From positions 95,555 through 133,422 of the forward strand of contig NIVC01002201.1 of the NCBI GenBank assembly GCA_002269645.1: a DNA stretch of 37,868 nt, in the 5' to 3' direction. Of this stretch, positions 457 to 37,868 are shown one piece after another; position 1 is the first letter of the stretch; each line of letters starts with the position of its first letter. The DNA is from Macrostomum lignano (Eukaryota). The notes under the pieces are model-generated. The model saw only the letters and a list, made by a program, of their open reading frames with translations, ran no database searches and was not told the DNA's origin. Made by a program: the position numbers and the translations under genes.

Positions 457-7279
<6,823 letters not shown>

Positions 7280-9391: not shown

Positions 9392-9630
9392 AAGGGGTTT
9401 CGATTCTCGACCAACTTGAACAACTAGTGGCCTTGAGCAAGACACGTACATGTACATGTAACTCTGCATTGCTTCAGTTCACCCAGTTGTAAAATGAGTA
9501 CCTGGGGTAATTGAGGGTGTGTGTAGCGACCCCCCCCCCCAGTCCTTGGACTGAACAGCCGACGCAGCCTTCAAATGCGCTTACGCATGCAATAGCTGCG
9601 GCTGAACTGTCGGTTGCACATATCTGGCCC
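9392..9630 (+). mobile_element. CORE-like SINE, family B, 5'-truncated copy
   Basis: Aligns with 28288-28533 over the B-box GGTTTCGATTCTCG, CCTTGAGCAAG...AACTCTGCATTGCTTCAG...TGTAAAATG, TTGGACTGAACAGCCG and CTGTCGGTTGCACAT. Confidence 0.75.
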
Positions 9631-10222: not shown

Positions 10223-11060
10223 TGTCATGAATGTGTTATGACAGTGTGCTCTTTGCTAAGTTGCTGCACCGGGCCAGTGGGCCGTCCTCTCCCCCTCCCC
10301 CCTCCTTAGATATTTTCTGACTCACCCACCTGCACTTCTGCGCGTGCGTACCCCTCTCCTCCCTGCCTAGACCTTTTCTGTTGAGTCAACCCCCCCCCCA
10401 TGCTCTGCGTGCGACCTCCCCCTGTGCGACCCCGCCCCATTATTTTGTTAGCTTTGCTGCCCCGCCCCTGTTTGTGATTGGCTGCCAGTCCCAGTCTGCC
10501 GTGCTGCGCCCCGGCGATTGGCTGGTACAGCTCATGCGTTGCCTTGGCTGATGTCTAAGCCCCCTTTTCTGCCTTTATCCCGCGCCCTCAACCCCCAGTT
10601 TGCTGCCTATTTATTCAGAGCCCCTTGAGACCCCATTCTCGTTGTCTTTGTGGCTCCTCGGCGATTGTGCCAGCGTTGGTTGCTGAATTGCTATTCCTCG
10701 CAGAATTGCTAGACAAATATATAAGTAAAGGATATCGAGATCACCACTGCTCTGACGGCGCTGTTTCTTGCACGACTGAAATCGCGGCTGGTAAGCCTTC
10801 CAATTTGTACGTCATTTGGGTCTGCATCTGTACTAGGCACCTTAGAGGGATTAAGTGCGTCGTACGCCGGTCCCACCCCAAGCAGCTCTGCGTCGTACGC
10901 GAGTCTGTAGGCTGTCGTGCGTCGTACGCTCGAGCAGCCTAGTCCCGACGGACACCGCGTCGTACGCGTGTCAGTGGAGGACCGCAGCCAGGGTCAGTAC
11001 ACGAACCCGGGTCTGGGAAAGGGGCACGAAAGGACCGAGCCCTTGAACCCCATCATCACA
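10223..11060 (+). mobile_element. Solo LTR (838 bp), probably Ty3/Gypsy-type
   Basis: Starts TGTCATGA and ends TCATCACA (TG...CA with a 7/8 terminal inverted repeat). Flanked by the 4-bp TSD GTTG (10219-10222 and 11061-11064). Removing it restores the sequence seen at 9956-9975. It contains GC boxes, ATTGG boxes and a TATA-like TATTTAT; the orientation is inferred from these. Confidence 0.8.
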
Positions 11061-11120
11061 GTTGTAACAACGTTGGTAACAACGTTGATACGTTGTTACA
11101 AACAACGTATCACGCGCTAT

Positions 11121-11522
11121 CTTGGGAACATGAAGCCTACGCGCACATCTTGGGAACATGAAGCCTACGCGCACATCTTGGGAACATGAAGCCTACGCGC
11201 ACATCTTGGGAACATGAAGCCTACGCGCACATCTTGGGAACATGAAGCCTACGCGCACATCTTGGGAACATGAAGCCTACGCGCACATCTTGGGAACATG
11301 AAGCCTACGCGCACATCTTGGGAACATGAAGCCTACGCGCACATCTTGGGAACATGAAGCCTACGCGCACATCTTGGGAACATGAAGCCTACGCGCACAT
11401 CTTGGGAACATGAAGCCTACGCGCACATCTTGGGAACATGAAGCCTACGCGCACATCTTGGGAACATGAAGCCTACGCGCACATCTTGGGAACATGAAGC
11501 CTACGCGCACATCTTGGGAACA
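11121..11522. repeat. 28-bp minisatellite (CTTGGGAACATGAAGCCTACGCGCACAT)n, about 14 copies
   Basis: Perfect 28-bp period. Confidence 0.97.
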
Positions 11523-13018
11523 AACATCATGCTGTTCGAATTCACAAATTGCATGGAAGATCCAGATGTGCATGCAATGTATAATAGAAAATTATTAACG
11601 TTGTACACCGCGTACATGAATTCGTACTGCTGCTGCGGCAAAGTGATAGTGAAAGAGCTGCAAAAGTTCCCACAACAGTTGCACAAGTTTCCGACGCCTG
11701 TACGTGTCTGTGTGTGCTATATCTAGTCGGCCATTATACCGTTTAGAATCGATTGCGCTTGCAAGTACGAATATAATATTGTGCATAATACAATCGCGTA
11801 TGCGATCGTTCATGGCTGCAGCGAACAGCTGAAGCGGTGGAAATGGCTGGGGATAGAATGAAGCCGCCTCCGATTTCGAAAGGCCCGATTTGGGGAGGTT
11901 GTTAGGTTGGGCGGGGAGCAAGTCAAGGAGGACGGCTTATACACAGCGATGCAGCACAGCAGCGACAGAATTTATCCATCCAGTTAGGATTCGCATTTGG
12001 GATTATAAGGCTCGTAAAATGGCGCGATGCTCGTATCTGAAGTGTCAGTTTAGCGTTTGGAGTCAAGCGGCGGGAAGAGGAGGGGAAGAGGGAGGGGAGG
12101 CATGGAGGGGACAGAAGCGGGGGCGGCAGTACCGTGATCGTACGCGCAAAATACTTAGCTGGGGGGTGGAGGCGGCGACCGACCGTTGGATATTCGACTT
12201 GATTCAATTCTGGCCTCCACTCGGGCTTCGCTCTATCCCTAAATTAGAGCGGCCCCACCAGGCCTCACTCGTCCTCCTCCTCCCTACTGCATAAGCCGGC
12301 AACCGCCAACCAGACCCCAAATATTTCTGCTTTGGCCGGCTCTCCCTCTCTCCCTCCTCTGCCTCTCGCGCGTGCCACAAGCAAGACCCCTCGCGGGCCA
12401 ACCGCAAAAGCCTCAGACGCAGACAGAGAGACAGACAGAAGAAGAAAGCAGCCCAGAAGAGAAAAGCAAAAAAGAAGCCCTCCTCTACTTTAGCTGCTTC
12501 TAGGGGTTGCTGGTGCTACGTTTCGCACTGGAATATTGCAGCCCAGGAAAATAGAAAGTAAAAATAAAGAAGAAGATCGAACAATACGAAGAGAGGCAAG
12601 GCCAAGCAGAGAAAGGAGGTGCAAAGTGTCGCACTGCTAATATCGGTCTCAGAAAGCGGCAAGTCAGCTAGTGAGCTTGGCTTTAAACTTCTGTTAATCA
12701 TCGCTATATATACATAGGCTTCCCTTATTCTGTTACAACCCACCCCAGTATAAAGCCTTTGTCCTCAGACACTTCTTCCCACTTTTACAAGAGCTAACAA
12801 TCACCCAATAGTTTGATTCTCCAGTCTTTGTCCCGTCGGTCACCGCCTTCCCCTCTCCCCTCTGTCCTACTGAAATGAGTCACGTGGACTATCCGTCATA
12901 AAAACGCTCTGCAAAAGCTAACCAAGTAAGGCAATATAAACAACGGTAACTTCCCCGCGCACGAGACCAGAGAGAGACAGGCATCAGTTCCCAATTCGGG
13001 GCCATTGGGCAGGCAGAA

Positions 13019-13951
13019 ATGAGCTCCCACTCGCACTGCAACGGCTATCAAAGTCTCCTAGCCGGAGGAGGCGGCGCGCAATGCGCTAACGGCACACCCC
13101 CGGTGACTGCGGCGGCTTCAGTTAGCCTCGGCAGCGGCAGCAACCAGCATTCTCTGATCGACACGGACCCGCCTCGCAGTCATCTGCATCACCACCATCA
13201 GCAGCCGTTGCCGCGCAGCGATCGCTCCGACCGGAAGCTGCTCGCTCCGCACTTCTTCGCCGAGTTGAACACCGACTTGGCTTCGTACGCCGACGCCGCC
13301 TCGTCGACAATGTCCGACGCTGGCGAGGGCGGCCGCGGCGGTCGCTCCCGTTGGCGCCGACTCCGGATGCGCCTGTGCCGCTTCTGCAACAGCGACGCTT
13401 TCGTCGACTGGAGCGTCGAACGTTTGTACCGGAAGTACGCTTTCCGACTGGAGCGGGCCATGCTAAGCCGCTTCCTGCTGACCTACGTCTGCCTGCTGCT
13501 GGCGCTGACGTCAATCGACTACGCATTCGGTCACCGGTTTTCCTACAAAGCCGCGGTATACGTCGCCTCCGCCTCGGCGTTCCTGTTTGCCGCGGTGTTC
13601 CTACACAGCCGGCTGATGCGGCCCGAGCACACGTCCACCGGCTGCGCTTTGGTGCTGCTCCTAGTCAGCCTGATCGCTGCCACGGCTTTCCCCGTCAGCT
13701 GGGTCAGCGCTTCAACAGTCCAGCAACAGCAGATTTTTACCATGGCCGACGGGCTGTGGCAGGTGGCATTCGCGGTGTTCGCAGTCTACTGCCTGCTGCC
13801 TGGTCAGCTGCTGGCCACGGCGCTCTACGGATCGGTTCTGAGCCTTTGCTACCTGGCGTGCTCGGCTGTGCTCACGAGGCAGCAGCTTGTGGAGCCAAGC
13901 AGAGCTGACAGCGTTGCTCGCAAGCATATCACTGAGAGCTACTGGACTTCT
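13019..13951 (+). CDS. ADCY-like exon 1 (N-terminus, TM1-5)
   Basis: ATG at 13019; donor TCT|GTGAGT at 13952; phase 0. Confidence 0.9.
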
Positions 13952-16900
13952 GTGAGTACAGACTTTTGTTAGAAGCGGGCCAATGAAATGACCAGAGATG
14001 GCCGCTAGGTGCTAAAGCATAGAATGTGCTCAAAATGAGCGTCAGAGGCGCATCTTTGGGTGACTTCGTGAGTAACTCTCTGAGTGTCGTCATGGGTGAC
14101 TCTCTGAGTGTCGTCATGGGTGACTCTCTGAGTGTCGTCATGGGTGACTCTCTGAGTGTCGTCATGGGTGACTCTCTGAGTGTCGTCATGGGTGACTCTC
14201 TGAGTGTCTTCATGGGTAACTCTGAGTGTCGTCATGGGTAACTCTCTGAGTTTCTTCATAGGTAACTCTCTGGGTGTCTTCGTGGGTAACTTTCTGAATG
14301 TCTTCATGGGTGACTCTCTGAGTGTCGTCATGTATGACTCTCTGAGTGCCTTCATGGGTGACTCTCTGAGTGTCTTCATGTGTGACTTTCTGAGTGCCTT
14401 CATGGGTAACTCTCTGAGAGTGTCTTCATGTGCAGATCTCCGAGGGTCTGAATGAGGCCAACAGTTCACATTTAACGCACTCGGTCCGTCGGTAAAATTC
14501 TTAAAAACCAGCGTTTTCCTGCACGTCCCGTAGCCCTTATGGGATTAACAATGCCCGCATCGTCCAAACCGGCAGTACTTCTCGTAGCATCACCTGTTTC
14601 AGAATGGTTTCGAATCATTCACGACGTACGAGTATCTGCGCAATACAAACGAGGAAGATTTCCCCTGCGTCAAGAGCTGTCTCTAGTGGGGGCTATGTGA
14701 GGTTCAGTCATGACTTTGCGAGCTGCTTTGAAGTCCCTTCGCCTTTAACTGCGCAAATTTGATAGATTCAGACTGAACAGCCAACCAATATGCCAGCCAG
14801 TGTAGCAGATCCAACAGCTGTCCCGTTCATTCCTATTTGCTAGTCAGAGCGCATAAAATCTCTTTCTAGGAATTAACTGACTGGCTGAAGTTTGAAGAAC
14901 GGCGTGCATAAAGTTAAAGAATTAGATGTTGCCGAAATCAATAATCAGTAATATACAGTGTGGGTTGACCAGGTGACCTGCACTGTATGTTGGTGCTGCG
15001 GTCCCTGTGTTTGATAGACACCTACCTGTTAGATAAACACCTACCTGATAGATAGACACCTACCTGTTAGATAGACACCTACCTGTTAGATAGACATCTA
15101 CCTGTTAGATTAACACCTACCTGTTAGATAGACACCTACCTGTTAGATAAACACCTACTTGATAGATAGACACCTACCTGTTAGATAAACACCTACTTGA
15201 TAGATAGACACCTACCTGTTAGATAGACACCTACTTGATAGATAGACACCTACCTGTTAGATAAACACCTACCTGTTAGATAGACACCTACCTGTTAGAT
15301 AACCACCTACCTGTTAGATAAACACCTACTTGTTAGATATACATATACCTGTTAGATAAACACCTACTTGTTAGATATACATATACCTGTTAGATAACCA
15401 CCTACCTGTTAGATAAACACCTACTTGTTAGATATACATATACCTGTTTGATAGATGCTTTCCTGTTACATATACACCTACCTTTTCGATAGACACCTAC
15501 CTGTTAGATAGACATCAAACTGTTTGATAGATGCTTACCTGTAAGATAAACACCAACCTGTTAGATAAATGTAGATGCCTTCTTATTTGATAGACACCTG
15601 TTAGACTGAAGATAGACACCTGTTAAACAGAAAATAGGCACCTGTTAGACAGAAGATATACACCTGTTAGACAGAAGCTAGACACCTGTTAGACAGAAGA
15701 TAGACACCTGTTAGACAGAAGATAGACACCTGTTAGACAGAAGATAGACACCTGTTAGACGGAAGCTAGACACCTGTTAGACAGAAGATAGACACCTGTT
15801 AGACAGAAGCTAGACACCTGTTAGACGGAAGCTAGACACCTGTTAGACGGAAGATAGACACCTGTTAGACAGAGAATCCTGCTAGTTATACAGACAGTAG
15901 CACGTCAGAAAAAATGGAATTTTGCCAGAATAGTCGACAGGAAAGCACCGAGGCAAATTATGCGGCTGAGTAGCAACCAATGCACAGGGGACGAGAATGC
16001 TTTGAGCAATTTAGAAACGTAACCCAGGACAACTGAACTCTTATTCCAATGCTGTGACTATTAAACTTGAAAACCGATTATCATGGAGGCCCTCCAATTT
16101 CCCAGTCTAAATCGATCCGATGGGAGCTGGGCTATGTGGACGCGAGGGTCAGGTCAAGTGGGGTTGCCAGTGACCTCAGAAGGCAAACTTTCGAGTTTTC
16201 TCTCTCTATCTCTGTTTTTATCCCTCCGTGTTGGCTGGGAGTTTTTGGGTCTAGCATCCTTAAATTTCTCCCATCGATGCTCAAAAGCTTTGGAATTTCT
16301 TTAAAATAGGCTTTTTAAAGTACATGTAAATTCTCGAATTGATAAAATTTCGATTCAAGTTTTAATCTTTACAAAATCAAGTCTGATACGCTATATACAA
16401 AATCACGCTGGGTTTCACTCAATAGAATTAAAATCCTTCTTCATTCGACTCTCACCCCGATGGAAACTCATTTTTGGAATCTTACCTCGCAGAATCTCGC
16501 CCCTAGAATCTTATCCTTCAGAATCTCACCCCTCAGAATCTCAGAATTCAGAATCTCATCTCTCAGAATCTCACCCCTAGGATCTTATCTTTAAGAATCA
16601 CATCACTCAGAATCTCACAATTCAAAATATCACCCTTCAGAATCTCACCCTTCAGAATCTCACCCTTCAGAATCTCACCCTTAGGAATCTCACCCTTCAG
16701 AATCTCACCCTTCAGAATCTCACCCTTCAGAATCTCACCCTTAGGAATCCCACCCTTAGGAATCTCACCCTTCATAATCTCACCCTTAGGAATCTCACCC
16801 TTAGGAATCCCACCCTTAGGAATCTCACCCTTCATAATCTCACCCTTAGGAATCTCACCCTTAGGAATCTCACCCTTAGGAATCTCACCCTTAGGAAGCT

Positions 16901-19900
16901 CACCCTTCATAATCTCACCCTTAGGAATCTCACCCTTCAGAATCTCACCCTTAGGAATCTCACCCTTCAGAATCTCACCCTTAGGAATCTCACCCTTCAT
17001 AATCTCACCCTTAGGAATCTCACCCTTAGGAATCCCACCCTTAGGAATCTCACCCTTCATAATCTCACCCTTAGGAATCTCACCCTTAGGAATCTCACCC
17101 TTAGGAATCTCACCCTTAGGAATCTCACCCTTCATAATCTCACCCTTAGGAATCTCACCCTTCAGAATCTCACCCTTAGGAATCCCACCCTTAGGAATGT
17201 CACCCTTCATAATCTCACCCTTAGGAATCTCACCCTTAGGAATCCCACCCTTAGGAATCTCACCCTTCATAATCTCACCCTTAGGAATCTCACCCTTAGG
17301 AATCTCACCCTTAGGAATCTCACCCTTAGGAATCTCACCCTTCATAATCTCACCCTTCAGAATCTAACAATTCAGAATCTCATCCCTCAGAATTCAACCT
17401 CTCAGAATCTCACCCCTCGAAATGTTACACTTCAGAATCTCAAACCTTAAATTCTTAGAATCTCACCGTCTAGATTCTCATCCCTCAGATTCTTACCCGT
17501 CAAATCTTACCAATCAGAATCTCAACCGCTTAGAGTTTGATTGACTTCTCAGCGTCTCACCCCCACAGAGCCTCAATTCAGCGAATCTCACCCATAGAAT
17601 ATCAACCCTGATAATATCCCTAAATTTCTCCAGCAAGAGTCAACAACAACATCACTTCTTCTTTCCCAATTTTCCAGCTGATCGCCTCATCACTTGTGCT
17701 GCTCTGCGCCAATCTGGGTGGCGCCTGTTTGCAGCGCTTTCGCGACAGCCTGTTGCGCCGCAGTTTCCTGGAAACCAAGGCCTGCATCGCCAATCAGCTG
17801 CAGTTGGATGACGAGACCTACAAGCTGGTGAGCTAGTTGCTGGGCAGGATTATAAAATTGTGGATCTGGATATGGGAATTTTGGAATTCGGGATCTGGTT
17901 ATGGGATTATGAAATTGGGGATCTGGATATGGGAATTATGGAATTTGGGATTTGGATATGGGAATTATGAAATTGGGGATTTGGATATGGGAATTATGAA
18001 ATTGGGGATCTGGCTATGGGAATTATGAAATTTAGGACTTGATTTTAGGGATTATGAATTTGGGGATCTAGACATTAAAATTATAGAATCGGGAATCTTG
18101 GGGATCTGGAAATGGGAATTATTACACTATACGCCATTCCATAAACTTTATCAATAATGGGATTATCTTGTATCTCTTATAAACAGCATTAATTGTTTCT
18201 CCTACAAGAGTACAGCCAGAAAAAGCAGCAAAAAGCATCGAACAAATAGAGGTGACAAAAATTCGGCTGTTGAGTCAGACTTTCAAACTTTTTTCCCTAA
18301 AGAAAAAGGGGATTTTTTCATCCCCCAGTGGGAGTGCAAGATTGATTGAACGGGAGCAGGCTAGTAAGGGATTGATGAAGGAACCAATGTGTCTAAAAGT
18401 ACATTTCGTCTTTAAGGGGGTTGCACTTTACAAATGAGGATAAATCTGTTTCCTCCTAATCAGACAGGGGATAGAATCTGTCTCTCTAGACTTTGAGTTC
18501 GCAATGATGCAGCTGGGAGTCTGGTGCAGCGGTACTTTGGGGACACATTTCGTTGTGTCTCATGGGAGAAGGGATCTGACCAGCGGTCCGCAGCTGATAT
18601 GACGTCGAAATCTCGTCTCCTACAAAAAGAGAAATCTTTTTTTTCAGTTATTTGGGCATTGCATCTCAGAATGGATTGGATTTCAAATTATTTGTTGGCT
18701 TTTACGTTTAAAGTACATCGTGACACTGGATAGTTCGATGTGCCGACTGATTTAGTCAATTTAAATTAGTAAATTCTTAGATCATGAAGTGGATTGGAGT
18801 AGAGATTATAATGTAGATTTGGGATTCTTGATTATAATCAAGAATTGGGATTTGGGAATATAATTTACAATTGGAGTGGGATTATAATGTAAAATAGGGC
18901 TTTGGGATTAGTATGTAGAATGGGGATTTGGGATTAGAATGTAGAACAGGGATTTGGGATCATAATGTAGAACAGGGATTTGGGATCATAATTTAGAACA
19001 GGGATTTGGGATCATAATGTAGAACAGGGATTTGGGATCATAATGTAAAACAGGGATTTGGGATCATAATGTAAAACAGGGATTTGGGATCATAATGTAG
19101 AACGGGGATTTGGGATCATAATATTGAAGATAGAGACTTAAACTGGTATAGGCTATGGTTCTGAATGCCACAAGATAGTTTAGGATTTCTTAAATCTAAG
19201 GAATGGGTTTCAGGATAGAGTAACCATGGCTGAGAAACTGAAAGGCCAATTTGCTAGTTGAAATTTCAGTTATAAAATTTCGAGTTGGGACCTGCGTATG
19301 GCTGCAGATTCAAGGCTATGCTATAAATTATTGGAATTTCTAAGTCTCTGCACTGCTGAGGCTGCAATTAGCTATAAAAGTCTAGCCGATGACTGTCAAA
19401 CTGCAGGGTCCGTGAAGAGGTATGGCGCACCAGCACTGCTGTTCGCTTCACTTCAAGCGTCATGTGTTGCCTTACCAGCCCGAGAGGGCCCCCAAACCCC
19501 CCCCCCCCCATAGCAACAAGACCGCAACCTCAGTGCATTTCTCATCCCACAGGAACGCCTGGTGCAGTCTGTGGTGCCTTCCGACCTGACGGACGACATG
19601 CGGGCCGACTGTCTGCATGGCAACTTCGGCTGGAAGGTGGCCCAGGTCAACCAGACACCGTACATGAGGTTGGGACTCTGGGTGATGGACTTCAGGGGGA
19701 CAGGGAGCTTGGGCGGAAAGAAAGACAGACGGGTAGATAGACAAGAAGACAGTCAGACAGGCGACGAGACAGACACTAAAACAAGCATTAAAACAGGAAC
19801 TAAGACACTAAACCAGACACTAAGACAGTCACTAAGACAGTCACTAAGACAGGCACTAAGACAGTCACTAAGACAGACAAAACTACACTAAATCAGACTC

Positions 19901-22900
19901 TATGACAGGAACTAGGACACTAAATTAGACACTAAGACAGACACAGACACTAAGACACTAGATCAGACACTAAGACAAACGCTAGATCAGACACTAAGAC
20001 ACTAGATCAGACACTGAGACAAACCGCTCACACAGGAGCAACCAACCGCCCCGCAGCCTGATGTGCGCCAGCATCTCTGGCCTCACCAAGTTCCCGGCCA
20101 GCTTCCCAGCCTCAGACGCGGTGAAGCTGATGAATCAGGTGTTCTGTCGGCTGGACCAATTAGCCTACGTAAGTGACAAAACACTGCAGGATACAATACT
20201 GTTTGCCAGAAAACAGAGCTAAAGACGGCAGTGGAAGCTGTCTCAGTCAGTAATAAATCGATGCTAAACATGGATTAATAACCGGAGACTTGTCGGCAGT
20301 TCATCTCTCCAGTTGTATGCAGATATCGAAGACAGCTTAGCAAATAAAGGGTTTAGAGAGGCATGTCTGTGCGCGGTAGTGACCGCTTGAAGTGCAGCAG
20401 CGATGAGTCATCCAAATTGCCGAGGGGCTGACTGGGTGTTGTGTGCTGCGGGAGGTTCTTTAGAAACTTGAATGGAAAGTTTTTTGCATGAATTGGCCAG
20501 TGCAGAATGGGTTTTTGCAAATGCAACATGGCTAAAGATTTGCGTCAATTAAGCTAGCTGAGTTTGAGAAATCATGAGCCGTACTTTTTGGGTCTAAGTA
20601 AATCAAAATTGCACAGAGATTGAGGAGGGACAGCGAAGAGATGAATGAAGGGAGAGTAAAGAGATTAAGGAAGAGCGGAGAGATGAAGGGAGAGTGGAGA
20701 GATGAAGGGAGAGTGGAGAGATGAAGGGAGAGTGGAGAGATGAAGGGAGAGTGGAGAGATGAAGGGAGAGCGGGAGAGATGAAGTGAGAGCGGGAGAGAT
20801 GAAGGGAGGGAGAGTGGAGAAATGTAGTGACGGAAAGCGGAGAGATGAAGGGAGAGCGGGAGAGATGAAGTGAGAGCGGGAGAGATGAAGGGAGGGAGAG
20901 TGGAGAAATGTAGTGACGCAAAGCGGAGAGATGAAGGGAGGGAGAGTGGAGAAATGTAGTGACGCAAAGCGGAGAGATGAAGGGAGGGAGAGTGGAGAAA
21001 TGTAGTGACGCAAAGCGGAGAGATGAAAGGAGAGCGGAGAGATGAAGCGAGAGCGGAAAGATGAAGGGAGAGCGGGAGAGATGAAGGGAGGGAGAGTGGA
21101 GAAATGTAGTGACGCAAAGCGGAGAGATGAAGGGAGGGAGAGTGGAGAAATGTAGTGACGCAAAGCGGAGAGATGAAGGGAGGGAGAATGGAGAAATGTA
21201 GTGACGCAAAGCGGAGAGATGAAGGGAGGGAGAGTGGAGAAATGTAGTGACGGAAAGCGGAGAGATGAAGGGAGGGAGAGGGAGAGAGGCAGAGAGACAA
21301 CACAGCATCTCTCAGAGAGCACAGAAGCACTTAAAGCCATCCTGATTATCCCTTCACAGGAGCATCAAGCGTTCCGAGTTCGAATCCAGGGCGACGAGTA
21401 CACTGCCGCCATCGGGTTCCCGCACGAGTGCGCCGAGCACGCCACTCTGGCTGTCCGCTTTGGCCAGGTTCTGCTGGAAATGATCGGGTGAGCTGGCGGC
21501 AGCTACTGCGGGAGGGAGAGACGCGAGAGAGAGATTAGAAGGAGATCATTGGGATTGATGAGATTGAGAGATTGGGGAAGGGATGTGACGGAGAAAAGAG
21601 AAGGAGAGATTGGGGAAGGGATGAGAAGGAGGGATGGGAAGAGAAATGAGAGGAGAGATGAGAGGGAGAGATGAGAAGGAGAGATGAGAAGGAGAGATGA
21701 GAGGGAGAGATGAGAGGGAGAGATAAGAGGGAGAGATGAGGGGAGAGATAAGAGGGAGAGATGAGGGGAGAGATGAGAGGGAGAGATGAGAGGGAGAGAT
21801 GAGAGAAAGATGAGGGGAGAGATGCGGGGAGAGATGCGGGGAGAGATGCGGGGAGAGATGCGGGGAGAGATGAGAGGGAGAGATGAGGGGAGAGATGAGG
21901 GGAGAGATGAGGGGAGAGATGAGAGGGAGAGATGAGAGGGAGAGATGAGAGAAAGATGAGGGGAGAGATGCGGGGAGAGATGCGGGGAGAGATGCGGGGA
22001 GAGATGCGGGGAGAGATGAGAGGGAGAGATGAGGGGAGAGATGAGGGGAGAGATGAGGGGAGAGATGAGGGGAGAGATGAGGGCAGAGATGAGAGGGAGA
22101 GATGAGGGGAGAGATAAGAGGGAGAGATGAAGGGAGAGATGAGGGGAGAGATGAGGGGAGAGATAAGAGGGAGAGATGAGGGGAGAGATGAGAATGAGAG
22201 GAGGGAAAAGAGCAGAGCAAGCAATGCAGGGGCAACCAAGGAGAAGCAACAAGTTCCGCACCGTTCGATATTCCAAGCAAAAGGCGGCTGCAACCAGCAC
22301 AGCCACAAGCAGCTCCCCAGCCTCTCTACTATGGATTTTTTACCCCAAAACTCCACACTCAACGCATTGCCCTCAGACTCTTTCTTTCCTTCACCATCCC
22401 AAAACTGATTCGGCTTGTAAAAGAAAGCCTAGGAAATTTATTTCAGGCATATGGCTATACTTGATAAGACACAGTTACTATTTCCAACTATGTATACAGA
22501 GTGCCGCCGCTGGCAATAGCTATCTGCTTCTAGGGGAAGGCTTGAGGATTGTCAGTCTCGAATATTGGACGAGTTTTAATTGCGGCAGGATTAATCCTGT
22601 GTAATCCGGGCCTGTTTAGCTTAATCCTACTGACTGCACAGCAGATGTTACAGACTTGTAGTTCAGGCTTTTCCACGCACCTGCTGCATGGACCGGGGTT
22701 GGGGTTAATGAATCGGAATCCATTACAGGTCTGGGTTGTATATACAGGATATGAGCCATCAGCTTGTACGGGGATCAGATGATCCCTAGGCTTCGGACTG
22801 GATATTTGCTCTGCAGTTTAATCACTGCAAGCTTTATGAATATTCTGTGTAAAACAGGCCGAATCTTTAGTGCATTCGCAACTTACCTCCCAGGTGACTC

Positions 22901-25900
22901 TTGAGCCTTGATCCATGGTTCGACTCCGCCCCCCCCCCCAAATTTGCAGGAATCTCTCCGAGTGCTCACAGCTGCCCCTGGAGGCCAGAGTGGGCATCAA
23001 CTCGGGCGTAGCTTACGCCGCCCTGCTGGGCAAATGCCGGCTCACCTATGACGTCATGGGCGAGCAAGTGGTCATAGCCAGGCGCCTCCTGCAAGCCTGC
23101 CCGCCTGGGTGAGCTGTCATACAGTCTACAGCTGGGCGAATTGAATTAAGTTTAGAAAGTGGAATTTAGATATTCCTCAGTGAGAGTTCTAGATTTATCT
23201 CAGGGTGAGAATAGCAAATTTCTAAATTCTTCTCAGGGTGAGATTTCTAAGTTTATCTTAAGAGTGAGATTTCTGAATTTATCGAAGGGGGGAGATTTCT
23301 CAATTAATCGAAGGGGGGAGATTTCTCAATTAATCTCAGGGGTGAGATTTTTGAATCCATCGAAGATGTGAGATTTCTAATTTCATCTTAGGGGTGAGAT
23401 TTCTAAATTCTTCTCAGGGTGAGATTTCTAAGTTTATCTCAAGGGTGAGATTTCTAAATTATTCTCAGGGTGAGATTTCTAATTTTATCTCAAGGGTGAG
23501 ATTTCTGAATTCTTTTCAGGGTGAGATTTCTAATTTTATCTCAAGGGTGAGATTTCTGAATTCTTTTCAGGGTGAGATTTCTAAGTTTATCTCAAGAGTG
23601 AGATTTCTAGGTTTATCTCAAGGGTGAGATTTCTAAGTTTATCTCAAGGGTGAGATTTCTAAATTCTTCTCAGGGTGAGATTTCTAATTTAATCTCAGGG
23701 GTGAGATTTCGCAATTAATCTCAGGGGTGAGATTTCCAAATTCTTCCCAGGGTGAGATTTCTAAGTTTATCTCAAGGGTGAGATTTCTAAATTTTTCTTA
23801 GGGTGAGATTTCTAAGTTTATCTCAAAAGTGAAATTTCTAAATTCTTCTCAGGGTGAGATTTCTAAGTTTATCTCAAGAGTGAGATTTCTCAATTAATCC
23901 CAGGGTGAGATTTCTAAATTATTCTCAGGGTGAGATTTCTAAATTCATCTCAGAGTGAGAGACACCCAAGGTTATCTAAGGCGTGAGATCTCAAAACTTA
24001 TCTCTGTTTTTCAATTTTGGTCAGAGGTTAGATTTTGAAAGCCCTTGATACAGAATCAAAGGTGAGATTCTTAAATTCATTGCAAGGGTGAGTTCGAAGC
24101 GCAAGCCTCACCAGTCAGCCTCTCCTCTACCAGGCGCATTCTTCTGTCTAAGTCGACCTACCTGGAGCTGGCGGACGCCGACCTGAGAGTCGAACCCGGG
24201 CCCCTGCTGGATCGGCCGGGCGCGAACGGCGGCGTTCGAACTAAACTGGAGACCGTGATTGTTCGGCCGCGGCAGCTCATGTCCGTGAGTTGGAGCAGAG
24301 AGAAGATGAAGGGTTGCCCACTGATTTTTTTAAGTTCGGCGAGATACCTAGTAACGGGAACTAGGTATAATGAGTCGATTTAATGAGTCAAGAAATAGCA
24401 TAGCAACCATATAGCAACCACAGCGACCGCATAGCAATGCCAGCAAGAGCAGAACAACAACATAACAACCGCATAGTAACCGCATTGAAACCGCATAGAA
24501 ACCGCATAGTAACCGCAGAGTGATCGGATAGTAACAACATACAACCGCAAAACAACGGCATAGCACCACATAGCAACCGCAAAAAAACGGCATAGCAAAC
24601 GCATAGCAACCGCATAGAAACCGCATAGTAACCGCAGAGTGATCGGATAGTAACAACATACAACCGCAAAACAACGGCATAGCACCACATAGCAACCGCA
24701 AAAAAACGGCATAGCAACCGCATAGCAACCGCATAGAAACCGCATAGTAACCGCAGAGTGATCGGATAGTAACAACATACAACCGCAAAACAACGGCATA
24801 GCACCACATAGCAACCGCAAAAAACGGCATAGCAACCGCATAGCAACCGCATAGAAACCGCATAGAAACCGCATAGTAACCGAAGAGTGATCGGATAGCA
24901 ACAACATACAACAGCGTAGCAACCGCGTAGCAACCGTATAGCAACCGCATAGCAACCGCATAGCAACCGCATAGCAACCGCATAGCAACCTTCGGGGAAA
25001 CTATTGGAGCTAAAATTTCTTCCTACAATGTCTTCTTCTATTGCAGTCATCCAAGAGCAGCTCGAGACAGCAGCATCATCTGGACGACGGGGAGCGGACC
25101 GAAGGACTCAGACGGTTGAGCCAGTTCGCCAATCACCAGTGCGAATCGCCGTTCCAGTACATTGGCGAGACTAAAGTCAACCAGGCTCAGCGAATGGTAA
25201 TTACCGGGCTGCAAACACTTGATCAAGTTTTTTTAGCAAAGCTGAGTAATCAGCTGATTGACTACTCTGACAGCTGGTCAGTTGAATTTTCAGTGAAAAT
25301 CGTCAATAGAGTGGTCAGTTGACCAACCCTCTAATCGAACTTCCATTGCGAAGTTTAGCTGACTCCATTTTTAGGGGACCCCGAACCTAAAAATCTATGG
25401 GGTAGGTCAATCTAATTATTGACCCCCAATCTAATAATCTATAGGGGAGGTCAGTTGACCCCCCAATCGAATTTTCTAAAGGGAGGTCAGTTGACCCCAA
25501 TCTAATTATCTATAGGGGAGGTCATTTGAACCCCAAGATAATAACCTAAAGGAGAGGTCACTTCACTTTCAATTTAGTTAACTATTGCGAAGGTCAGTTG
25601 ACCCCAATATAATAATCTATAGGGGAGGTCAGTTGACCCAACTCATCTTAAATTCGATCTGCTGGCCTCTATCTATCAATTTGTGTAAAAACTTCACAAC
25701 TTTAAATGTTAACAAATCTTTCAGAAGCTGACCGAGGAACTTCTGAAGTGCCAGCCCTCAGGAAAAATGTAAGAATCCTAACAACTCGTGGAAAATGTAT
25801 TCGAACAAATTTTAAAAGTACATATTCGAACCCACCCTCGCAGCAGGAGTTCCGGTGGCAGCTCCAGTCCTCTCATTGGGAACGGGCACGCGGCTTCGTT

Positions 25901-28900
25901 CAAAGGCACCGAACTCACCCGCCTGGGCAGCGTCAAGACTTCGTCGACCTCTTCAGGCTGCGGTGGTCAAGTAGCTGCTAGCGGCGCCTCAACAACCGTG
26001 CTGAGGCGCTGCCGAACCAGCATGAACCCGGTGACGCTGAAGTTCTCAACTCAGGCTAAAGAGAATGAGGTGAGCAGGAGTGCTTAAGTTGAACTCGAAC
26101 CGAAAGTTTGGTTATAGCTTTTGTTTAAGAATTCGAAATTCAGTCTTGACAACAGCTTAGCAAATCGCATGGCAACTGCGTAGAAATAGCATAGCAACCG
26201 CACAGCGACTGCATAGCAATCAAAAAGCATCGGCGTAGCAACCGTGTAGCAACTGTACAGCAAGCGAGAAACGTAATGAAAAAGCAATCAGCATAACAAC
26301 CGCATAGAAACCGTGTACCAACCGCATAGTAACTACATGTACGTAACTCGTAAACAGTAATGAGATAGAAACAGCTATCTCAGCAACCTCAAAGCAACAG
26401 CATAGCAACCGCATCGCAACCGCATCGCAACCGCATCGCAACCGCATAGCAACCGTATGGCAACTGCATAGCAACCACATAGCAACAATATAGCAACCGC
26501 ATAGCAACCGCATAGCAATCGCATAGCAACCGCATAGCAATCGCATAGCAACCGCATAGCAATCGCATAGCAACCGTATGGCAACCGCAGAGCAACTGCG
26601 TACCAACCGCGTTGTAACTAAACAGTAATCAATCAGATAGATACAACCTAGTCTCTACATTGCTTTAAAATAGTATAGCAACCGCTTAGCAACCCCACAG
26701 CAACTGCATAACAACCGAGTAAAATAATAGTTTGAATCGGTCTCGCCCTAAACAGTACAAAAAAACGACGAAAAGATGTCATTCATTTTGCTTAGAATTT
26801 ATTCGCTAAATACATTGCAACTGAAAACTCAAACAAACAATTCCAGTACCACAGACAGGAGGATCACACATTCGGAGCGGCAATGCTAGCGGCCCTATTC
26901 ATTTTGCTAATTAGCGCCAGCCTTCAGGCTTCAGTGCTGCCCAGGTGAGCTCTTCGCGGAGAAAATGTAGAGATGCTGTTAAAAGCTGTTTTAATTAATT
27001 ATTAATGAACCCTTCCCCATTTTAGAACCATGCTGCTATTGCTGCTATTCATGATTGCGTTCACCTGGATTGGCATGATGCTCATGGTGTTGCTGGCTGC
27101 CAGGCTTAAGGTGAGCAAATTCAAATCAAGTTTGAGTTGGACTCCAATGAACCGCTCCATGCACCTATCTTGTCCCAGATTTGAAGGCCTTGAACGGATG
27201 GCTTGTTATGTCACACAAGCGCGCGGATGCGTACGCAGTCATACGCACAGGCACACACTCACACAGGAGTGTACAGCGGCCCTAACTTTATTTATCGTTA
27301 GTCATGTACACTTCACTGTCCTTAGGGTTGGCCTTCAAAGGTGTTAATTGCACGAGCAGAGCCAAGCCGAGATTCCAATTCTGCCTTAAATTAATGTGAC
27401 TGCACTTGGAATCGAGCCTGGGCCGCTGGCACATCAGAGCGCCGAGTTGGACCACTGGGCTATAAGATATTGAATGGCAGTTACTTTAATCTATACCCTG
27501 TAGAAATTTATGCACCCCATCAACTATGCAGAGATTAATTGAACAATTTCATTGGTGATTAAGTCACGCGTGAAAGAATCTAAATTCACTGTACACAATG
27601 CAGTAATTGTGAAAACAACCAATTTCCAATCGACAGTGCCTGGAATTCAACATTCAGAGCTCATTCGTCATACGAGTGGTTGTCATCATTACTTCGGTTC
27701 TGTTTGTGTACGCCGTATCGCAGGCCAATGTGGTGAGCTGAGCTGGCGTTTAGTGCTGTCGGGCTTGGGCTGGAGGTGGTTTTAGGATTTTCAACCGAAT
27801 TTATTGATTATTTGGCATCGGTTTTCAGTTCTGCTGCCGTTCGACAGTGGGCAACAGGACCACGTACGGCCCGATTCTGCAGGACTCGGACAACTCACTG
27901 GAGCTGCAGTGCCCGCTGCCGGACTTCATTTACCTGTCTGGCACCCTCTGCCTGATCTTGGTGGCTGTGTTCGCATCGCTGCCCTCCTTCATCAAGCTGT
28001 TCCTGCTCGTGGCCGTGTCCACCACCTTCGGCCTGACTGTAGCTGTCACGCATCGTCCGCTGTTCTCGCTGGTTGACTCCGATGTCAGAGGGCTGGCGAG
28101 TCTGTCCGGTCTGGCCGCCTCCGCTCACGACATGTCAGCTGGCCCTGTGCCAACCTTTGTCTGGGGCCTCGTCTGCCTGACCGCTTTCTCCATCTTGATC
28201 TTCGTGCACTCTCGGTTTCACGAGTTCGCCCAGCGACAGGAGTTCCAGTGGAAGTCGCAGGTGAGCTTCCATGATAGCCTAGAGTTTTAGCCTAGTGGCT
28301 AGAGCGTCGGAATTGAGACTGAAAGGTCCGGGGTTTCATTCTCGACCCACTCGTAACAATCTATAGTCCTTGACTTCTTGAGCAAGGCATTTAACTCTGC
28401 ATTGCTTCAGATCACCCAGCTGTAAAATGGGTGCCAGCATTAGCTGGAGTAATTCTAGGGGATCTTTGGACTGAACAGCCGTACGCAACCTTCAGATTTA
28501 CTCGGGCTCGAGCTGTCGGTTGCACATCTGCCCATTAGAAGATGGAATAGGAGAGGAGAGGGAGGGGATTAGAGAGTAGGGAGCTGAGAAGAGACACAAA
28601 CCCTGAGCGGCCCAGATTGCCATTGTGAAGTTTCAAAGGACCCGAGGGCCGGATAGAAAGGCTTTGTGGGCCGGAGTTTGCCGATCCTGAATAGCAAATG
28701 AATCACATATTTGCTTCTCCTGTGGTAAATTCAAAATGTTTTTTTAGAGAAAAAGTTTAAATAATAGTATGGGGTAGCGGAAGCTCTCACAATTCTGTTG
28801 TGTTTTAATTGAGGATTTTGCAAAGATTTTCTTTTTAATAGAAAAATCAACATTTCTACTTAGCAGACTTACAACCCTCGTACAGCCCAAATCGAATCAT

Positions 28901-31900
28901 TCTCTTTCATTTTTAACGAATATTTTTTCAGTCCGCCGAGAACCAGCACGACATGTTCCTGGTGAAGGAGGCCAGTTGCTGTTTGCTGAAAAATCTGCTG
29001 CCGCAGCACGTTGCGCTGCATTTCACGGATACGACTTATCGAAATCCTGTGGTGAGTACAGCTGGTAGCGGGTTTCACTTATTTAATTAATCTAATCTAT
29101 TTAAATCAGCTGATAGCAATGATAGAAATATCCTATTCGAGTGTAACGTCAAGTGCAATTCACCAGAAGAATAGGAGCTCGACTTTTTCTGACAAATTTA
29201 TTCATAGACAGCTTATTCATATTTACATAGGGAACTTGGCATGTAGTGTATATTGATAGAATAAGAGGCACAGATAGAGAGGGTTACACAGACTCGAGGT
29301 CAGTTGCCAGGCCACGAATTATTATAAGCATAACTCCGACGCGCAACGACGAAGCGTCGCACTAGAGGCCCGAAATGCCCTCCCTCATCCACTCTGGCCC
29401 AGCAAACCTTACCGAATGCCTTGATGGATGGGGCATGCCAAAGCCAAAGCCTGCCCCTGCCACCGAGTGCCGGTGGGGGTTTGCCGGTTGTTGCGCAGGG
29501 AATGAAGCCGAAAAAAGCGACGCGGAACTATAGGAAAAACTTGCCCGATTCCTCATCAATATATGCATATCTGCGCGTGCCTCGCGTGCCCGCATTCGAG
29601 CTTGGGTGAGTCATCAGAGCTAGCTGGAGAGGAGAAAACTTCACTATGGCTGGGGGTTTCGGGAGTTTGACGCGCGCGGTTTCGGTAGCAGTCATAACTT
29701 CGGTTCCCCAGTTGGGAGTATGCTGGGCTGAAGCCGGGAAAGCCTTCGAGTTTCGACCTGTGCAGCAGGGAGCCAGAGGGATGTGGAGTGCGTAGGAATT
29801 TCACAAAAAGCTAGAAAACCGTTTTTACTGACAGAGAAGCTCAGGGGTTAAGGCGTTTGACTCCAGGCACCAAAGTACCTGGGCCACACAAATTTGAGGC
29901 TCGTGAAAAAATTTACCTGACGTTTGGCACGAAAAATCGCCCATGAGGGCCAAAGCCCCAGGTCACAGAGTGAGAAATGCCTGCCAATGAGAAAGTCAGG
30001 GCCGTCTGTACATCCTGTGGATTTTTGCCTGCATTTCCGTGCGCCTTTGTGTGCTCTTTTGATGCCCTCCCCTAACGTCTCTCGCCAACACAGGATCTGT
30101 ACGCCCAAGAGTACCAGCTGCTGGGCATCCTGTGGGCCAATCTACCGGATTGGCAGCCAGCTCCTGGCACTGAGGCTCCCCTGCTTGTCCAGGAGAGCAT
30201 CCGGGTGCTCAATGACGTCATCTGCGAGCTGGACGAGCTAATTCAACGTGCCGACCGACACCAGGAGCTCGTCAAAGTGCGCACAGTTGGGGAAAACTAT
30301 GTAGTAGCTGTTGGCATGAATCCGCAACTGCAGGACAACCCGGCCAGCAAGCTGTTCCACCTTACCGGTCTGGTCCAGCTGGCCCAGCTGATGCGCCGCA
30401 GGGTGGCTGAACTCAACGCCACACTGTACGAGGATCGCATCCGTATGCGGGTTGGCATCGACCTCGGACCCGGCTTCTGCGGCGTGGTCGGCGGCTCCAG
30501 GCCAGTTTTCGACATCTGGGGCCAGGCAGCATCTATTTCGAAAGTGCTGGCCTCAGCGGCCGGTCCCGGACAGATCCTAGTGTCCGAACGTGTGCACCGG
30601 GTGGCTCAGCAGCAGTTCGACTTTACCGAGCATTCGTCGCACAACGTTGACGGCTTGCGAGTTCGCGCCATGGTGCTGCGCGAGGGCCGACCGGCCACGT
30701 CCTCTAGCCGAAATTCTCAAGTGACTGTAAATTCCACTGGCTTCCGTCAGCATCAAGGCAGTCAGCAACACCATCATCAACCGAGCCGCCGACAAAATAG
30801 CCCGCTAGAGTCGCCACAAGAAGCTTTCTCGGTGCTACAGGCCGGAGTCTCCAATAACATTTACTCTGCCCACTGCGGCAGCGGTTCCGGCCTCAAGCCG
30901 ATACCCGAGACGCACACACGGAGCGTGGTCGCTGCTGAAACGCAGACGCCGACTCTGCCACCGCCGCCTCCGCCACCTCAACTTCAGCCTCAGATTCAAC
31001 CGCAGCCTCACCAGCAGAAGCCGCAGAGGCCTCGAAGAATTAGCGACACCGTTGCCAGTAGGTCATCCCTGAGCAGTTTCCTCATGCACGAGAGTGCCGC
31101 CTTTCAGTCGGCGGCTAGGCATCCGCCGGGTGACACGCTCGATCAGATTGTCACCTCTGACGAAGATGAAGTAGCAACTGAGGCTACGGACAACGCCGCT
31201 GCAGTCAGCGCTTCGGCTACCGCCTCTGCTGAGATGCCGGGGCCGGTGAGCCACAGAAACCCGCTGTACACTGACACTGAGTACGATTCTATGGCTGAGA
31301 GTAGCGCAAACATCTTCATGGAGATGGCGGCTGTGAAGTCATCGGCTCCCGTGCCGCCTCCGCCGCGACCTCCACGTGGCAGTCACGGTCATAGCACCAG
31401 CATGACGCGATCGAACTCCGACACCAGTGGACATCACCAGTCTCAGCCTCAGCACCAATACCGGCCTCCTCCGCCAGTAGCCGCAGCTCGCGCTTCTGGA
31501 AAGTCTCGCACCTCAGCAAGCCCATCAGCCGAAGGTAGCCAGCGCAGCACGCCCAGTGCCCGTCACCTAGACTTCCCCGAGTATACGCGCCCGAGTCCTC
31601 CGATCTTGTCGCCAGCCAGTCGGCTGAGTGACTCCTCTGGAGGTAGCCGTTGCGGCGCTGGAGGCTTGAAGACTTCACCGCCATCAGACACGGCTGGGGC
31701 CACTTTGTCGCTTCCACCAATTGAGGCACCGATCTCTACAGCGTCCGCGACATCAACCAGCGCAGAACCCTCGCAGCGTTCAAACGCAGCCGCCAATACT
31801 GGCTGGGAAACGACGAACACATGCAGCGGCTCTACTGTGCCTCCAGTACTGTTCCGATTGGCCAAGGAACGCAGCGGAGCGTTCCGACTGGCGCCAGTAG

Positions 31901-34787: not shown

Positions 34788-36352
34788 TCACTTGGTAGTC
34801 GCGGTGTTGGCCTTAGGCGATCCTTTGTCGCGCTGGCAGAAGATAGTTTGGATCACTGCCAGCCGGATTTGCCGATTGCTCAGGTGCACCAAAGATGATG
34901 ACAGCCGAATGGCAGGTGAGCCAGCCAAGTTACGAACAGGTGAACCCGGGCGGAACCACAGTGTTGCTGACGTCCACCAGAATGACAACAGTGTAGGGTA
35001 TCCAGCAGACGCAGAAGGCTACGATCATAGCCAGCAATGTACGGCAAGCTCGTGCTGTCTCTCGCCAGACAGCGCTTGGTCGAGGCGTTGGCTTGTCCAG
35101 ATGAGACGTGACGGCGGCGAGAAGGCGAAGCTTTGTAGAGTGAACCTTGACTAGGACTTTTATATTAGCGGCCAGCATCAGAGTCAGCGGGAAAGAGATC
35201 AGACCGACGCCGACAAAGAATGTGTACGACGAGGACGCCGTTCTCTGCCAAGCGCAGCTCTCGCTTTTCGATCGTAGAAATGGCCGCCCCAACCGAGAAA
35301 GTTACCAGCTCGGCTGTCAGGCTCAGCACCCAGCACAGGCAGCACTGCACAATGGCCTTTCGTCGGCTGAATAGGCTCTTGTACATTCGGTTGTGAGATG
35401 AATACCGTTCTGGATGCGTGGTGATGCAGATGCCAGACTGAAGAAGGCGCAGAAGCAGGCTGTCAGGCACAGCGAAGCGACCAGAGTGCAAAGTTCAGGT
35501 CTCTCAGTCAGATATTTTTCGCCTTTAATGGCAGCTGGAGGGGAAACGGAGACGCTTTTTACATTCAAGTAGCTTCGTTTCGACGTGTCTCAGGTACTAT
35601 GTCAGTGTGTTATTGTGACTCCAGCGACGTGTCTTCTTGGACCTACCAGACTTAAGACTTGATGGATGTATCCTTGACCACAAAAGACCCAAAACTAGCT
35701 CCAGTGATGTGTCTTGAATAGCCTAAGACCCACGACTCAGCGATGCTCATCATTGACCGCGCCTAGACTCAAGACTCCAGTGATGCATCATTGACCCACC
35801 TAAAACACAGGCCTCCAGCAATGTACCATTGACCCATCAAACCCCTAAGACTCCAGCGATGCATCATTGACCCGCCTAAGACCCAAGACGCCAGGGATGG
35901 TGTATCGTTGGCCCACCTAAGACCCAAGACGCCAGGGATGGTGTATCGTTGGCCCACCTAAGACCCAAGACTCCAGGGATGGTGTATCGTTGGCCACCTA
36001 AGACGAGATCAACTGAGATTCGAGCAGATAGGACACGACAGCCAGTTAATTCTGACCTTACATACACTGTTCAATAGCAACAGCAACTCACGACAATGCA
36101 CAGAGGATCGGCCAGTCCAGTGGACGCACAGATCAGCCAAGCACATGTTGGCCATGAACTCCCGGCCAACCTTCTGCACATCGGGCCGAGCCAACAGGGT
36201 AATAAAAATGGCGATATTGCTAAAAACCCAATGACCATGGCGAGGGAAGTCAGACTCACGTAGGGATAGAAAACAATGGGATCAGAGTCGATCAGAGCTG
36301 GTAGGTGCTCAAAAGCAGTCTCCAGTTCGGTAACCGTATCGTTAGCAGTCAT
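34788..36352 (-). pseudogene. Class A GPCR, melatonin-receptor/Tre1-Moody-like, 2 exons (36092..36352, 34788..35534), interrupted by at least 7 frame changes; a pseudogene or an intact gene with consensus errors
   Basis: Motifs recovered by switching frames: TM1 GFL-GN-IAI, TM2 NMCLADLCV, TM3 C...SL..RY, TM4 CW, ECL2 NFLGWGGHFYDRK-SESCAW, TM5 FPL, TM6 FCVCWIPY, TM7 WLAHL, and the tail LSNRQIR...TTK*. Confidence 0.75.
35720..36003. repeat. ~41-bp minisatellite (GACCCAAGACGCCAGGGATGGTGTATCGTTGGCCCACCTAA)n in the GPCR intron
   Basis: 41-bp period on the right, diverged units on the left. Confidence 0.88.
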
Positions 36353-36902: not shown

Positions 36903-37630
36903 GATGAGGCAGATGCAGCTCGACTGGACTATACCAAAGCAGATGCAGCTGAGGCAGATGCAGCTGAGGCAGATGAAGCTGAGACAGATGAAGCTGAGAC
37001 AGATAAAGCTGAGACAGATGCAGCTGAGACAGATGAAGCTGAGAAAGATGAAGCTGAGGCAGATGAAGCTGAGGCAGATGCAGCTCGACTGGACTATACC
37101 AAAGCAGATGCAGCTGAGGCAGATGCAGCTGAGGCAGATGAAGCTGAGACAGATGAAGCTGAGGCAGATGAAGCTGAGGCAGATGCAGCTCGACTCGACT
37201 ATACCAAAGCAGATGAAGCTGAGACAGATGAAGCTGAGACAGATAAAGCTGAGACAGATGCAGCTGAGACAGATGAAGCTGAGAAAGATGAAGCTGAGGC
37301 AGATGAAGCTGAGGCAGATGCAGCTCGACTCGACTATACAAAGCAGATGCAGCTGAGCAGATGAAGCTGAGACAGATGCAGCTGAGACAGATGCAGCTGA
37401 AGCAGATGAAGCTGAGACAGATGCAGCTGAGACAGATGAGCTGAGGCAGATGCACTTGAGGCAGATGAAGCTGAGGCAGATGCACTTGAGGCAGATGAAG
37501 CTGAGGCAGATGAAGCTGAGACAGATGCAGCTGAGGCAGATGAAGCTGAGGCAGATATGAAGCTGAGACAGATGCAGCTGAGACAGATGAAGCTGAGAAA
37601 GATGAAGCTGAGGCAGATGCAATTGAGGCA
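36903..37630. repeat. 15-bp minisatellite (GCAGATGAAGCTGAG)n with a recurrent CTCGACTGGACTATACCAAA variant
   Basis: 15-bp period; the variant marker is spaced 165, 105 and 135 bp apart, all multiples of 15. Confidence 0.95.
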
Positions 37631-37868
37631 GCCAAGGTGCCATAATAAAATAAAGAAAGTGTTCACCAAGTGCAGGTTACTTCCATATCTACAGGTCCTG
37701 TTAAAACTGCTGTTACAGTCCTTAGTAATTTATTCCAACATTGCTACACTGCAAATTGGTTGATCATAAAAATTGAATATTTTTATGATGATTCTAAAAG
37801 TACAAACAAAATAGAGTTTGAGCAAATTAGACCCTAGGGATCACTACACATCTACAAATATTTTCGCT

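Follow-up and report, generated by a model that had tools for sequence, protein, structure and literature searches.

The window analyzed here, a stretch of 37,868 nucleotides from contig NIVC01002201.1 of the flatworm Macrostomum lignano, carries on its forward strand an intact gene with the layout of a full-length transmembrane adenylyl cyclase (tmAC). Its product is probably a noncatalytic "pseudo-cyclase". It keeps three of the eight catalytic positions and is altered at the other five, and synthesis of cyclic AMP (cAMP) at a useful rate would not be expected. With moderate confidence, the gene is interpreted as encoding a cyclase-dead tmAC of the rutabaga/AC1-like lineage that would have been kept for a noncatalytic job. 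A maintained candidate pseudo-cyclase had already been proposed in a sequence-only reading of this DNA. That proposal is strengthened by a second M. lignano paralog (type B, the window gene being type A), which has the same five changes, open reading frames, and a protein conserved despite saturated synonymous sites.

The eight positions supply the metal ligands and serve in base recognition, at the ribose, in the transition state, and at the triphosphate (PMC3591389). The C1 and C2 domains of the window protein were aligned with HMMER to PDB chains 8sl3 (AC5), 8buz (AC8), 1cjk and 1azs_A (AC5-C1), and 1azs_B (AC2-C2), and to AC9. These alignments are ungapped around every catalytic motif. Residue numbers were counted in them from D396 and D1018 and then mapped to the genome (Table 1). 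The first of the two C1 metal aspartates, D396, is Ser405, and the second, D440, is kept. Ser and Val occupy the places of the transition-state pair N1025-R1029, in which the Asn binds the ribose; of the two triphosphate-binding residues, R484 is kept, and K1065, the lysine for the gamma-phosphate, is replaced by Asp. In the adenine-specifying pair, K938 is Arg and D1018 is kept. Each of these assignments, including the change of VKGKG to VDGLR, had been made in the sequence-only reading, and all residues and coordinates were reproduced by the structure alignments. The pseudo-symmetric second site is not competent, with N and E at the aspartate-equivalent positions of C2, and the equivalents of the forskolin pocket are degenerate in exon 6 (DVMGEQVVIAR).

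In an exhaustive HMMER search, the C2 exon was compared with 1.84 billion representative proteins, and the best 150 matches were considered. The window's own public protein came first, followed by canonical animal tmACs; the type B representative was not among these 150, a list from which absence does not equal true absence. The 133 two-domain tmAC representatives nearest in this library were taken as the canonical set. D396 is kept in 128 of the 133, K1065 in 130, D440 and R1029 in 132 each, and R484, K938, D1018, and N1025 in all 133. The eight positions are 96-100% invariant in the canonical cyclases, the deviants being the window protein and the type B family only. The losses extend to neighboring near-invariant positions: of the 68 columns that are conserved in at least 93% of the canonical proteins, the window protein keeps 38 (23/38 in C1 and 15/30 in C2). 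Catalytic-domain identity to any canonical cyclase is 26-30%, whereas canonical rutabaga-type domains from different phyla agree at 63-76% and different tmAC subfamilies at 52-58%. Evolution of the catalytic core has thus been much quicker than in any of the active relatives, and the low identity indicates a release from catalytic constraint. Two other proteins with seemingly degenerate residues, P0107 and P0114, proved not to be animal pseudo-tmACs. P0107 has the C2-type domain first and the C1-type domain second, and was set aside as a candidate pseudo-cyclase because the metal Asp pair and the K/D/N/R/K set are apparently present when it is read in swapped order; P0114 is a Mastigamoeba protein.

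The best nonself relative of the window protein is P0001, encoded by M. lignano BOX15_Mlig009489g1, the type B gene, of which there are two further near-identical copies (Mlig012584g1 and Mlig012968g1). At D396, K938, N1025, R1029, and K1065, type B has C, R, R, A, and D, respectively. Types A and B are therefore altered at the same five positions, with two identical replacements (K938R and K1065D) and three that differ (S/C, S/R, and V/A). The simplest reading of this coincidence is that catalysis would have been lost once, before the A/B duplication. The two types have the same architecture and a core identity of 43%, rising to 59% (counted by eye) in the C2 alpha3' region. They also have in common several motifs that occur in none of the other 150 representatives, namely FFAELNTDLA.YAD at the N-terminus, PASKLFHL before C2 alpha3', and ERIA.EARR and SEGEVP in the tail; exon 1 of the window gene holds the family-private motif FFAELNTDLASYAD (13253-13294), common to type B only. 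The type B protein is shorter than the window protein (1656-1672 aa), lacks the C-terminal YESEYDN, and has an additional C2 insert; divergence of the catalytic domains is even greater in type B (20-24% identity). The two genes are deep paralogs without synteny: their loci have no common gene neighborhood, and similarity at the DNA level is confined to a single interspersed repeat and a few conserved exons. The repeat, a dispersed element of ∼150 nt with 75-82% identity, occurs in the window at 28296-28453, within the intron that separates exons 13 and 14, and at 9394-9502; on another M. lignano contig, it occurs in the type B locus L001 at 10911-11059.

The divergence between types A and B bears on how long the genes have been maintained. 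The proportion of synonymous differences (pS) is 0.58-0.68, corresponding to a synonymous divergence (dS) >1.1, near saturation, and the nonsynonymous divergence (dN) is 0.54-0.83. Among 397 core residues that are identical in the two proteins, 203 use different codons, which implies that the proteins have been held in place over a long time. Saturated synonymous sites and full reading frames in both types point to long purifying selection after catalytic loss, and we infer that both paralogs have since been kept by such selection for a noncatalytic job. Selection within a type was computed on type B copies only: for the recent copies L001 and L002, dN/dS (omega) is 0.34 overall and 0-0.26 per domain, values based on ∼20 synonymous and 12 nonsynonymous changes. 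A ratio near 1 had been named in the sequence-only reading as the finding that would speak against maintenance, and these ratios, for all the few substitutions behind them, lie below it. The two marks of a pseudoenzyme, loss of essential residues and maintenance by selection, are both seen here, the latter in the intact ORF, in protein conservation against saturated synonymous sites, and, on small counts, as omega <1 in type B. Exact look-ups of the public protein A0A1I8GG26 and of the last-exon open reading frame (ORF) matched no contig and returned no second type A copy; a word-indexed protein search was insensitive for this query and missed the window's own public protein.

Apart from its catalytic residues, the window protein has the layout of a canonical cyclase, two blocks of six transmembrane (TM) helices alternating with C1 and C2 (6TM-C1-6TM-C2), followed by a C-terminal tail of ∼1040 aa. 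The 12-TM cyclase with intact TM and coiled-coil architecture described in the sequence-only reading is borne out by hydropathy (6+6 hydrophobic TM segments) and by Pfam matches to AC_N (PF16214; E=1e-14, aa 123-380) and, in two stretches, to PF00211 (E=2.3e-50), the better of which spans profile positions 2-172 of 183. Alignments to the AC5, AC8, and AC9 structures run through both cyclase domains, as expected for the class III nucleotidyl cyclase fold, and both helical domains align to AC5 and AC8. The tail is rich in S, A, and P and carries conserved short motifs. Conservation is poor in the linker (C1b), the exons of which are uncertain.

Among canonical proteins, the nearest relatives are rutabaga/AC1-like cyclases of protostomes, comprising Drosophila rutabaga and type 1-like proteins of molluscs, annelids, nemerteans, chelicerates, and crustaceans (Tubulanus, Ylistrum, Lottia, Octopus, Haliotis, Owenia, Limulus, Penaeus, and Drosophila). 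A single high-scoring segment pair covers aa 116-1239 of the window protein in the alignment to the Tubulanus AC1-like protein (E=8e-147); the extreme C-terminus gives a match of its own. Summed BLAST scores are 534-556 for Tubulanus AC1-like and Drosophila rutabaga, 389 for AC8, 323 for AC2-like, and 285 for AC9. Relationships were otherwise judged from MAFFT-based identity tables and motif synapomorphies. One of these motifs is Y[ED]SEYDN, found in 24 long-tailed rutabaga/AC1-like cyclases of molluscs, annelids, nemerteans, and arthropods (for example, P0006, P0009, P0011, P0022, and P0026), always within the last 80 residues and usually 50-65 from the C-terminus. The window gene keeps it. 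Judged from these similarities, the gene is a descendant of the Ca2+/calmodulin-type (rutabaga/AC1-like) lineage. Since the motif survives without catalysis, it is a candidate catalysis-independent interaction site.

What the noncatalytic job might be is suggested by the parts that the protein retains. Both six-helix membrane anchors and both helical domains are present, as are the tail motifs and a pair of foldable cyclase-homology domains. Conservation is best in TM7-TM9, in the C2 alpha2'/alpha3' region, which in canonical enzymes forms the G-alpha-s groove, and in the short tail motifs. This distribution favors a decoy or scaffold role, and we tentatively propose that the window protein may partner active cyclases in this way. 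The conserved TM7-TM9, the C2 alpha2'/alpha3' groove, and the tail motifs would bring it into the membrane complexes of these cyclases, where it could compete with them for G-alpha-s or other activators and for anchoring partners; alternatively, it might heteromerize with active cyclases. Either way, cAMP synthesis would be damped or localized. It is also possible, although rather doubtful, that Macrostomum, and perhaps other flatworms, have an old, maintained family of full-length pseudo-adenylyl-cyclases derived from rutabaga/AC1, acting purely through the membrane anchor, the G-protein-binding groove, and the tail motifs.

Several points weigh against this interpretation as a whole. When the catalytic domains alone are compared, type A is equally far from all tmAC subfamilies, and rutabaga is no closer than AC8. 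The decoy or scaffold mechanism is drawn from the retained surfaces only. Types A and B are unlike each other in the nucleotide pocket as well as in the equivalents of the forskolin pocket, so that no conserved ligand site backs a sensor role. The type B omega values come from the small counts given above. A serine is able to ligate Mg2+, and Lys1178 adjoins the position of the missing R1029 (ISKVL), so that trace or unorthodox activity is conceivable.

The last of these points leads to one of the alternative explanations, a working nucleotidyl cyclase with an unorthodox site, in which, for example, Ser405 and Asp449 would hold the metal and Lys1178 would stand in for the arginine, or one with a different substrate. 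Besides this lysine, the retention of D440, R484, and D1018 speaks for such an enzyme, and the base-specifying pair is open to variation in class III cyclases. However, five of eight essential positions that are nearly invariant in the canonical relatives are changed, the surrounding near-invariant columns have been lost as well, and types A and B disagree at three of the five replaced positions, so that they conserve no alternative catalytic arrangement. An active enzyme is therefore considered quite unlikely. The main rival is a noncatalytic membrane receptor or scaffold independent of active cyclases, in which the anchor or the tail signals and the dead C1/C2 pair is a structural hub. Whether type A is compared with type B or with the canonical AC1-like proteins, conservation is strongest in TM7-TM9 and in the tail and N-terminal motifs, not in the catalytic pockets, and the long S-, A-, and P-rich tail also fits this explanation. 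Retention of the whole C1/C2 module with both helical domains, in contrast, suggests that cyclase-type conformational machinery still matters, and the cyclase-independent receptor or scaffold is rated unlikely.

A further alternative is a decaying or unexpressed duplicate (a pseudogene) in a repeat-rich, partly polyploid genome, for which the very fast evolution of the catalytic domains and the introns filled with minisatellites speak. Against this stand 2271 codons without stop or frameshift across 15 canonical introns, a protein conserved relative to a paralog with saturated synonymous sites, a C-terminal motif conserved with molluscs, annelids, and arthropods, and omega <1 among the type B copies; decay is thus highly improbable. 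An artifact of the gene model, with a true mRNA that uses other exons and restores the catalytic motifs, would draw on the ambiguity of the linker exons and on the public model, which differs in several places. Yet all substituted residues lie in exons that align end to end with AC5, AC8, and AC9, and the public protein has an identical C2. The sequence-only reading had allowed for cDNA with alternative exons restoring these motifs; at the genome level, a tblastn comparison of six canonical cyclases with the whole window revealed no extra cyclase-like coding segment in the introns and no alternative exon restoring FADI or NxxxR in any of them. An artifact of this kind is barely credible. The preferred interpretation remains a pseudo-cyclase of rutabaga/AC1-like descent kept for a noncatalytic function.

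Cyclase-like coding pieces were found on the forward strand at 13.0-33.9 kb as stop-to-stop frames. The gene model was built by scoring GT/AG pairs between homology-anchored pieces, with the best database relative as a guide. It extends from 13019 to 33856 and comprises 16 exons with a coding sequence of 6816 nt, encoding 2271 aa and ending in one terminal stop (Table 1). All 15 introns are GT-AG, with donors mostly G|GTGAGC/T, and there is no internal stop or frameshift. The span of 13019-30660 given in the sequence-only reading has to be extended, as 30660 marks the end of C2 only and the locus ends at 33856. The frame of exon 1 is open from 12950, with the Met at 13019. Exon 11 has 83% nucleotide identity to the type B locus and is conserved with canonical AC1-like proteins. 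More than one solution exists for the linker exons (25047-25276 and the 5' end of 25847-26069), which lie outside the catalytic domains. Exon 15, which is 100% identical to the public protein, runs another 1.6 kb past C2 and ends at a micro-intron that is required to connect two frames, and type B homology resumes downstream of it. This micro-intron is only 31 nt long and is embedded in a coding region of 60% GC; the other introns of the gene measure 81-3726 nt.

The protein is already in public databases, labeled as an ordinary adenylate cyclase. The record, UniProt A0A1I8GG26 (P0003), is a partial automatic M. lignano model named "adenylate cyclase" that begins at exon 7 and differs from the present model in the linker, where it uses different small exons, in one donor, and in the tail. 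Over the region compared (24134-33400), it omits the conserved helical-domain segment VHSRFHEFAQRQEFQWKSQ and, in the linker and tail, adds several small introns that switch the frame and lack support from homology.

A fragment of a rhodopsin-family G-protein-coupled receptor (GPCR) lies tail-to-tail just downstream of the cyclase gene (Pfam 7tm_1, E=6e-11; CWIPY in TM6), with further exons probably to ∼35500. A 324-aa open frame on the opposite strand upstream has no Pfam match and may be a gene fragment or repeat derived. Upstream of exon 1, there is an exact eight-residue copy of RIKLLGDC, the AC8 C1 metal-site motif, on the minus strand; it was judged to be a chance match because a stop follows directly. 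The larger introns and the flanks on either side are full of minisatellite or microsatellite arrays, including a 25-nt unit repeated 65 times (98% identity) and (GACA)x252.

Table 1. Exons, catalytic positions, and other features of the window
Feature	Position	Strand	Description
Exon 1	13019-13951	+	Start codon, N-terminal region, TM helices 1-5; donor TCT|gtgagt
Exon 2	17678-17827	+	TM6 and start of helical (coiled-coil) domain 1; from junction scoring, aligns to AC5/AC8 helical domain
Exon 3	19553-19668	+	Remainder of helical domain 1, start of C1; junction fits type B spacing
Exon 4	20057-20168	+	C1 beta1/alpha1, CASISG; Ser405 codon AGC at D396
Exon 5	21360-21487	+	C1, IQGDEY; holds D449
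Exon 6	22950-23108	+	C1, EARVGINSG; holds R493
Exon 7	24134-24284	+	End of C1; 53% identity to type B over this stretch
Exon 8	25047-25276	+	Linker (C1b); boundaries uncertain, best-scoring of 242 in-frame splice chains
Exon 9	25847-26069	+	Linker to NPVTLKF (before TM7); 5' boundary uncertain, 3' donor GAG|gtgagc firm
Exon 10	26796-26944	+	TM7
Exon 11	27026-27110	+	TM8 (LFMIAFTWIGMMLMVLLAARLK), membrane segment with highest conservation
Exon 12	27637-27732	+	CLEFNIQ and TM9
Exon 13	27829-28260	+	Extracellular loop, TM10-12, start of helical domain 2; aligns to AC5/AC8 "DFLWK" region
Exon 14	28932-29051	+	Helical domain 2 (LVKEASCCLLKNLLPQHVA)
Exon 15	30094-32292	+	Entire C2 (30094 to ∼30690) and first part of disordered tail; 2.2 kb
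Micro-intron	32293-32323	+	31 nt, AT-rich, GT-AG (gtatgacc...aattatag)
Exon 16	32324-33856	+	Remainder of tail, stop codon 33854-33856; DYDNM, ERIAAEARR, and SEGEVP (common to type B)
YESEYDNY	33800-33823		C-terminal Y[ED]SEYDN motif, in exon 16
D396 (metal ligand) → S405	20070-20072		Lost; CASISG versus FADIEG
D440 → D449	21393-21395		Kept
R484 → R493	22987-22989		Kept; EARVGINSG versus NMRVGIHSG
K938 → R1091	30280-30282		Changed
D1018 → D1168	30511-30513		Kept
N1025 → S1175	30532-30534		Lost
R1029 → V1179	30544-30546		Lost
K1065 → D1214	30649-30651		Lost; NVDGLR versus NVKGKG
RIKLLGDC match	12797-12820	−	Chance match
GPCR fragment	34933-35301	−	Rhodopsin family
Open frame	5110-6081	−	324 aa
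Mini-/microsatellite arrays	647-2260, 3531-4538, 11112-11522, 14075-14418, 15008-15873, 16476-17442, 17849-19122		
Mini-/microsatellite arrays	20645-22200, 23218-24004, 24398-24990, 25419-25639, 26382-26610, 35722-36004, 36939-37631		

A literature search that did not cover all journals retrieved no paper describing a pseudo-cyclase, an inactive full-length animal tmAC, or a flatworm cyclase of this kind, in line with the earlier statement that no well-characterized, fully dead 12-TM animal cyclase was known. Automatic "adenylate cyclase" names (EC-type, UniProt) inflate the cAMP-synthesizing repertoire inferred from such records. The noncatalytic roles under debate for tmACs include scaffolding, heteromerization, and possibly a receptor function of the anchors. 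To our knowledge, every animal tmAC studied is active, and these roles are for that reason hard to separate from cAMP production. An inactivated yet preserved full-length tmAC in two deep paralogs would be a ready-made separation-of-function allele, in an animal that is amenable to RNA interference and transgenesis. If the interpretation is correct, the pseudo-cyclase family constitutes a natural experiment that splits the scaffold and receptor functions of tmACs from catalysis.

Among known systems, the protostome rutabaga/AC1-like cyclases resemble the window protein most closely, in the 6TM-C1-6TM-C2 layout, the best full-length match, the TM7-TM9 block, the very long tail, and Y[ED]SEYDN. 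They differ in keeping all eight catalytic residues, compared with three of eight in the window protein, whose catalytic domains are 26-28% identical to theirs. Loss of catalysis at a single site has precedents. Soluble guanylyl cyclase heterodimers contain a noncatalytic pseudo-site with a regulatory function. The second (forskolin) site of the tmACs is likewise a pseudo-symmetric site that has lost its catalytic residues and is now regulatory (PMC3591389). In both of these systems one site is active, whereas the C1/C2 pair of the window protein lacks essential residues in both. A functional parallel may be AC3-AT, an inactive isoform of mammalian adenylyl cyclase 3 that associates with the active cyclase and reduces cAMP output (PMC11971047). 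It is truncated at the N-terminus and arises from an active gene by alternative splicing or promoter use, whereas the window protein is the product of a separate full-length gene with substituted catalytic residues. As a natural, tmAC-derived inactive protein, AC3-AT nevertheless provides a functional model for the proposed decoy role.

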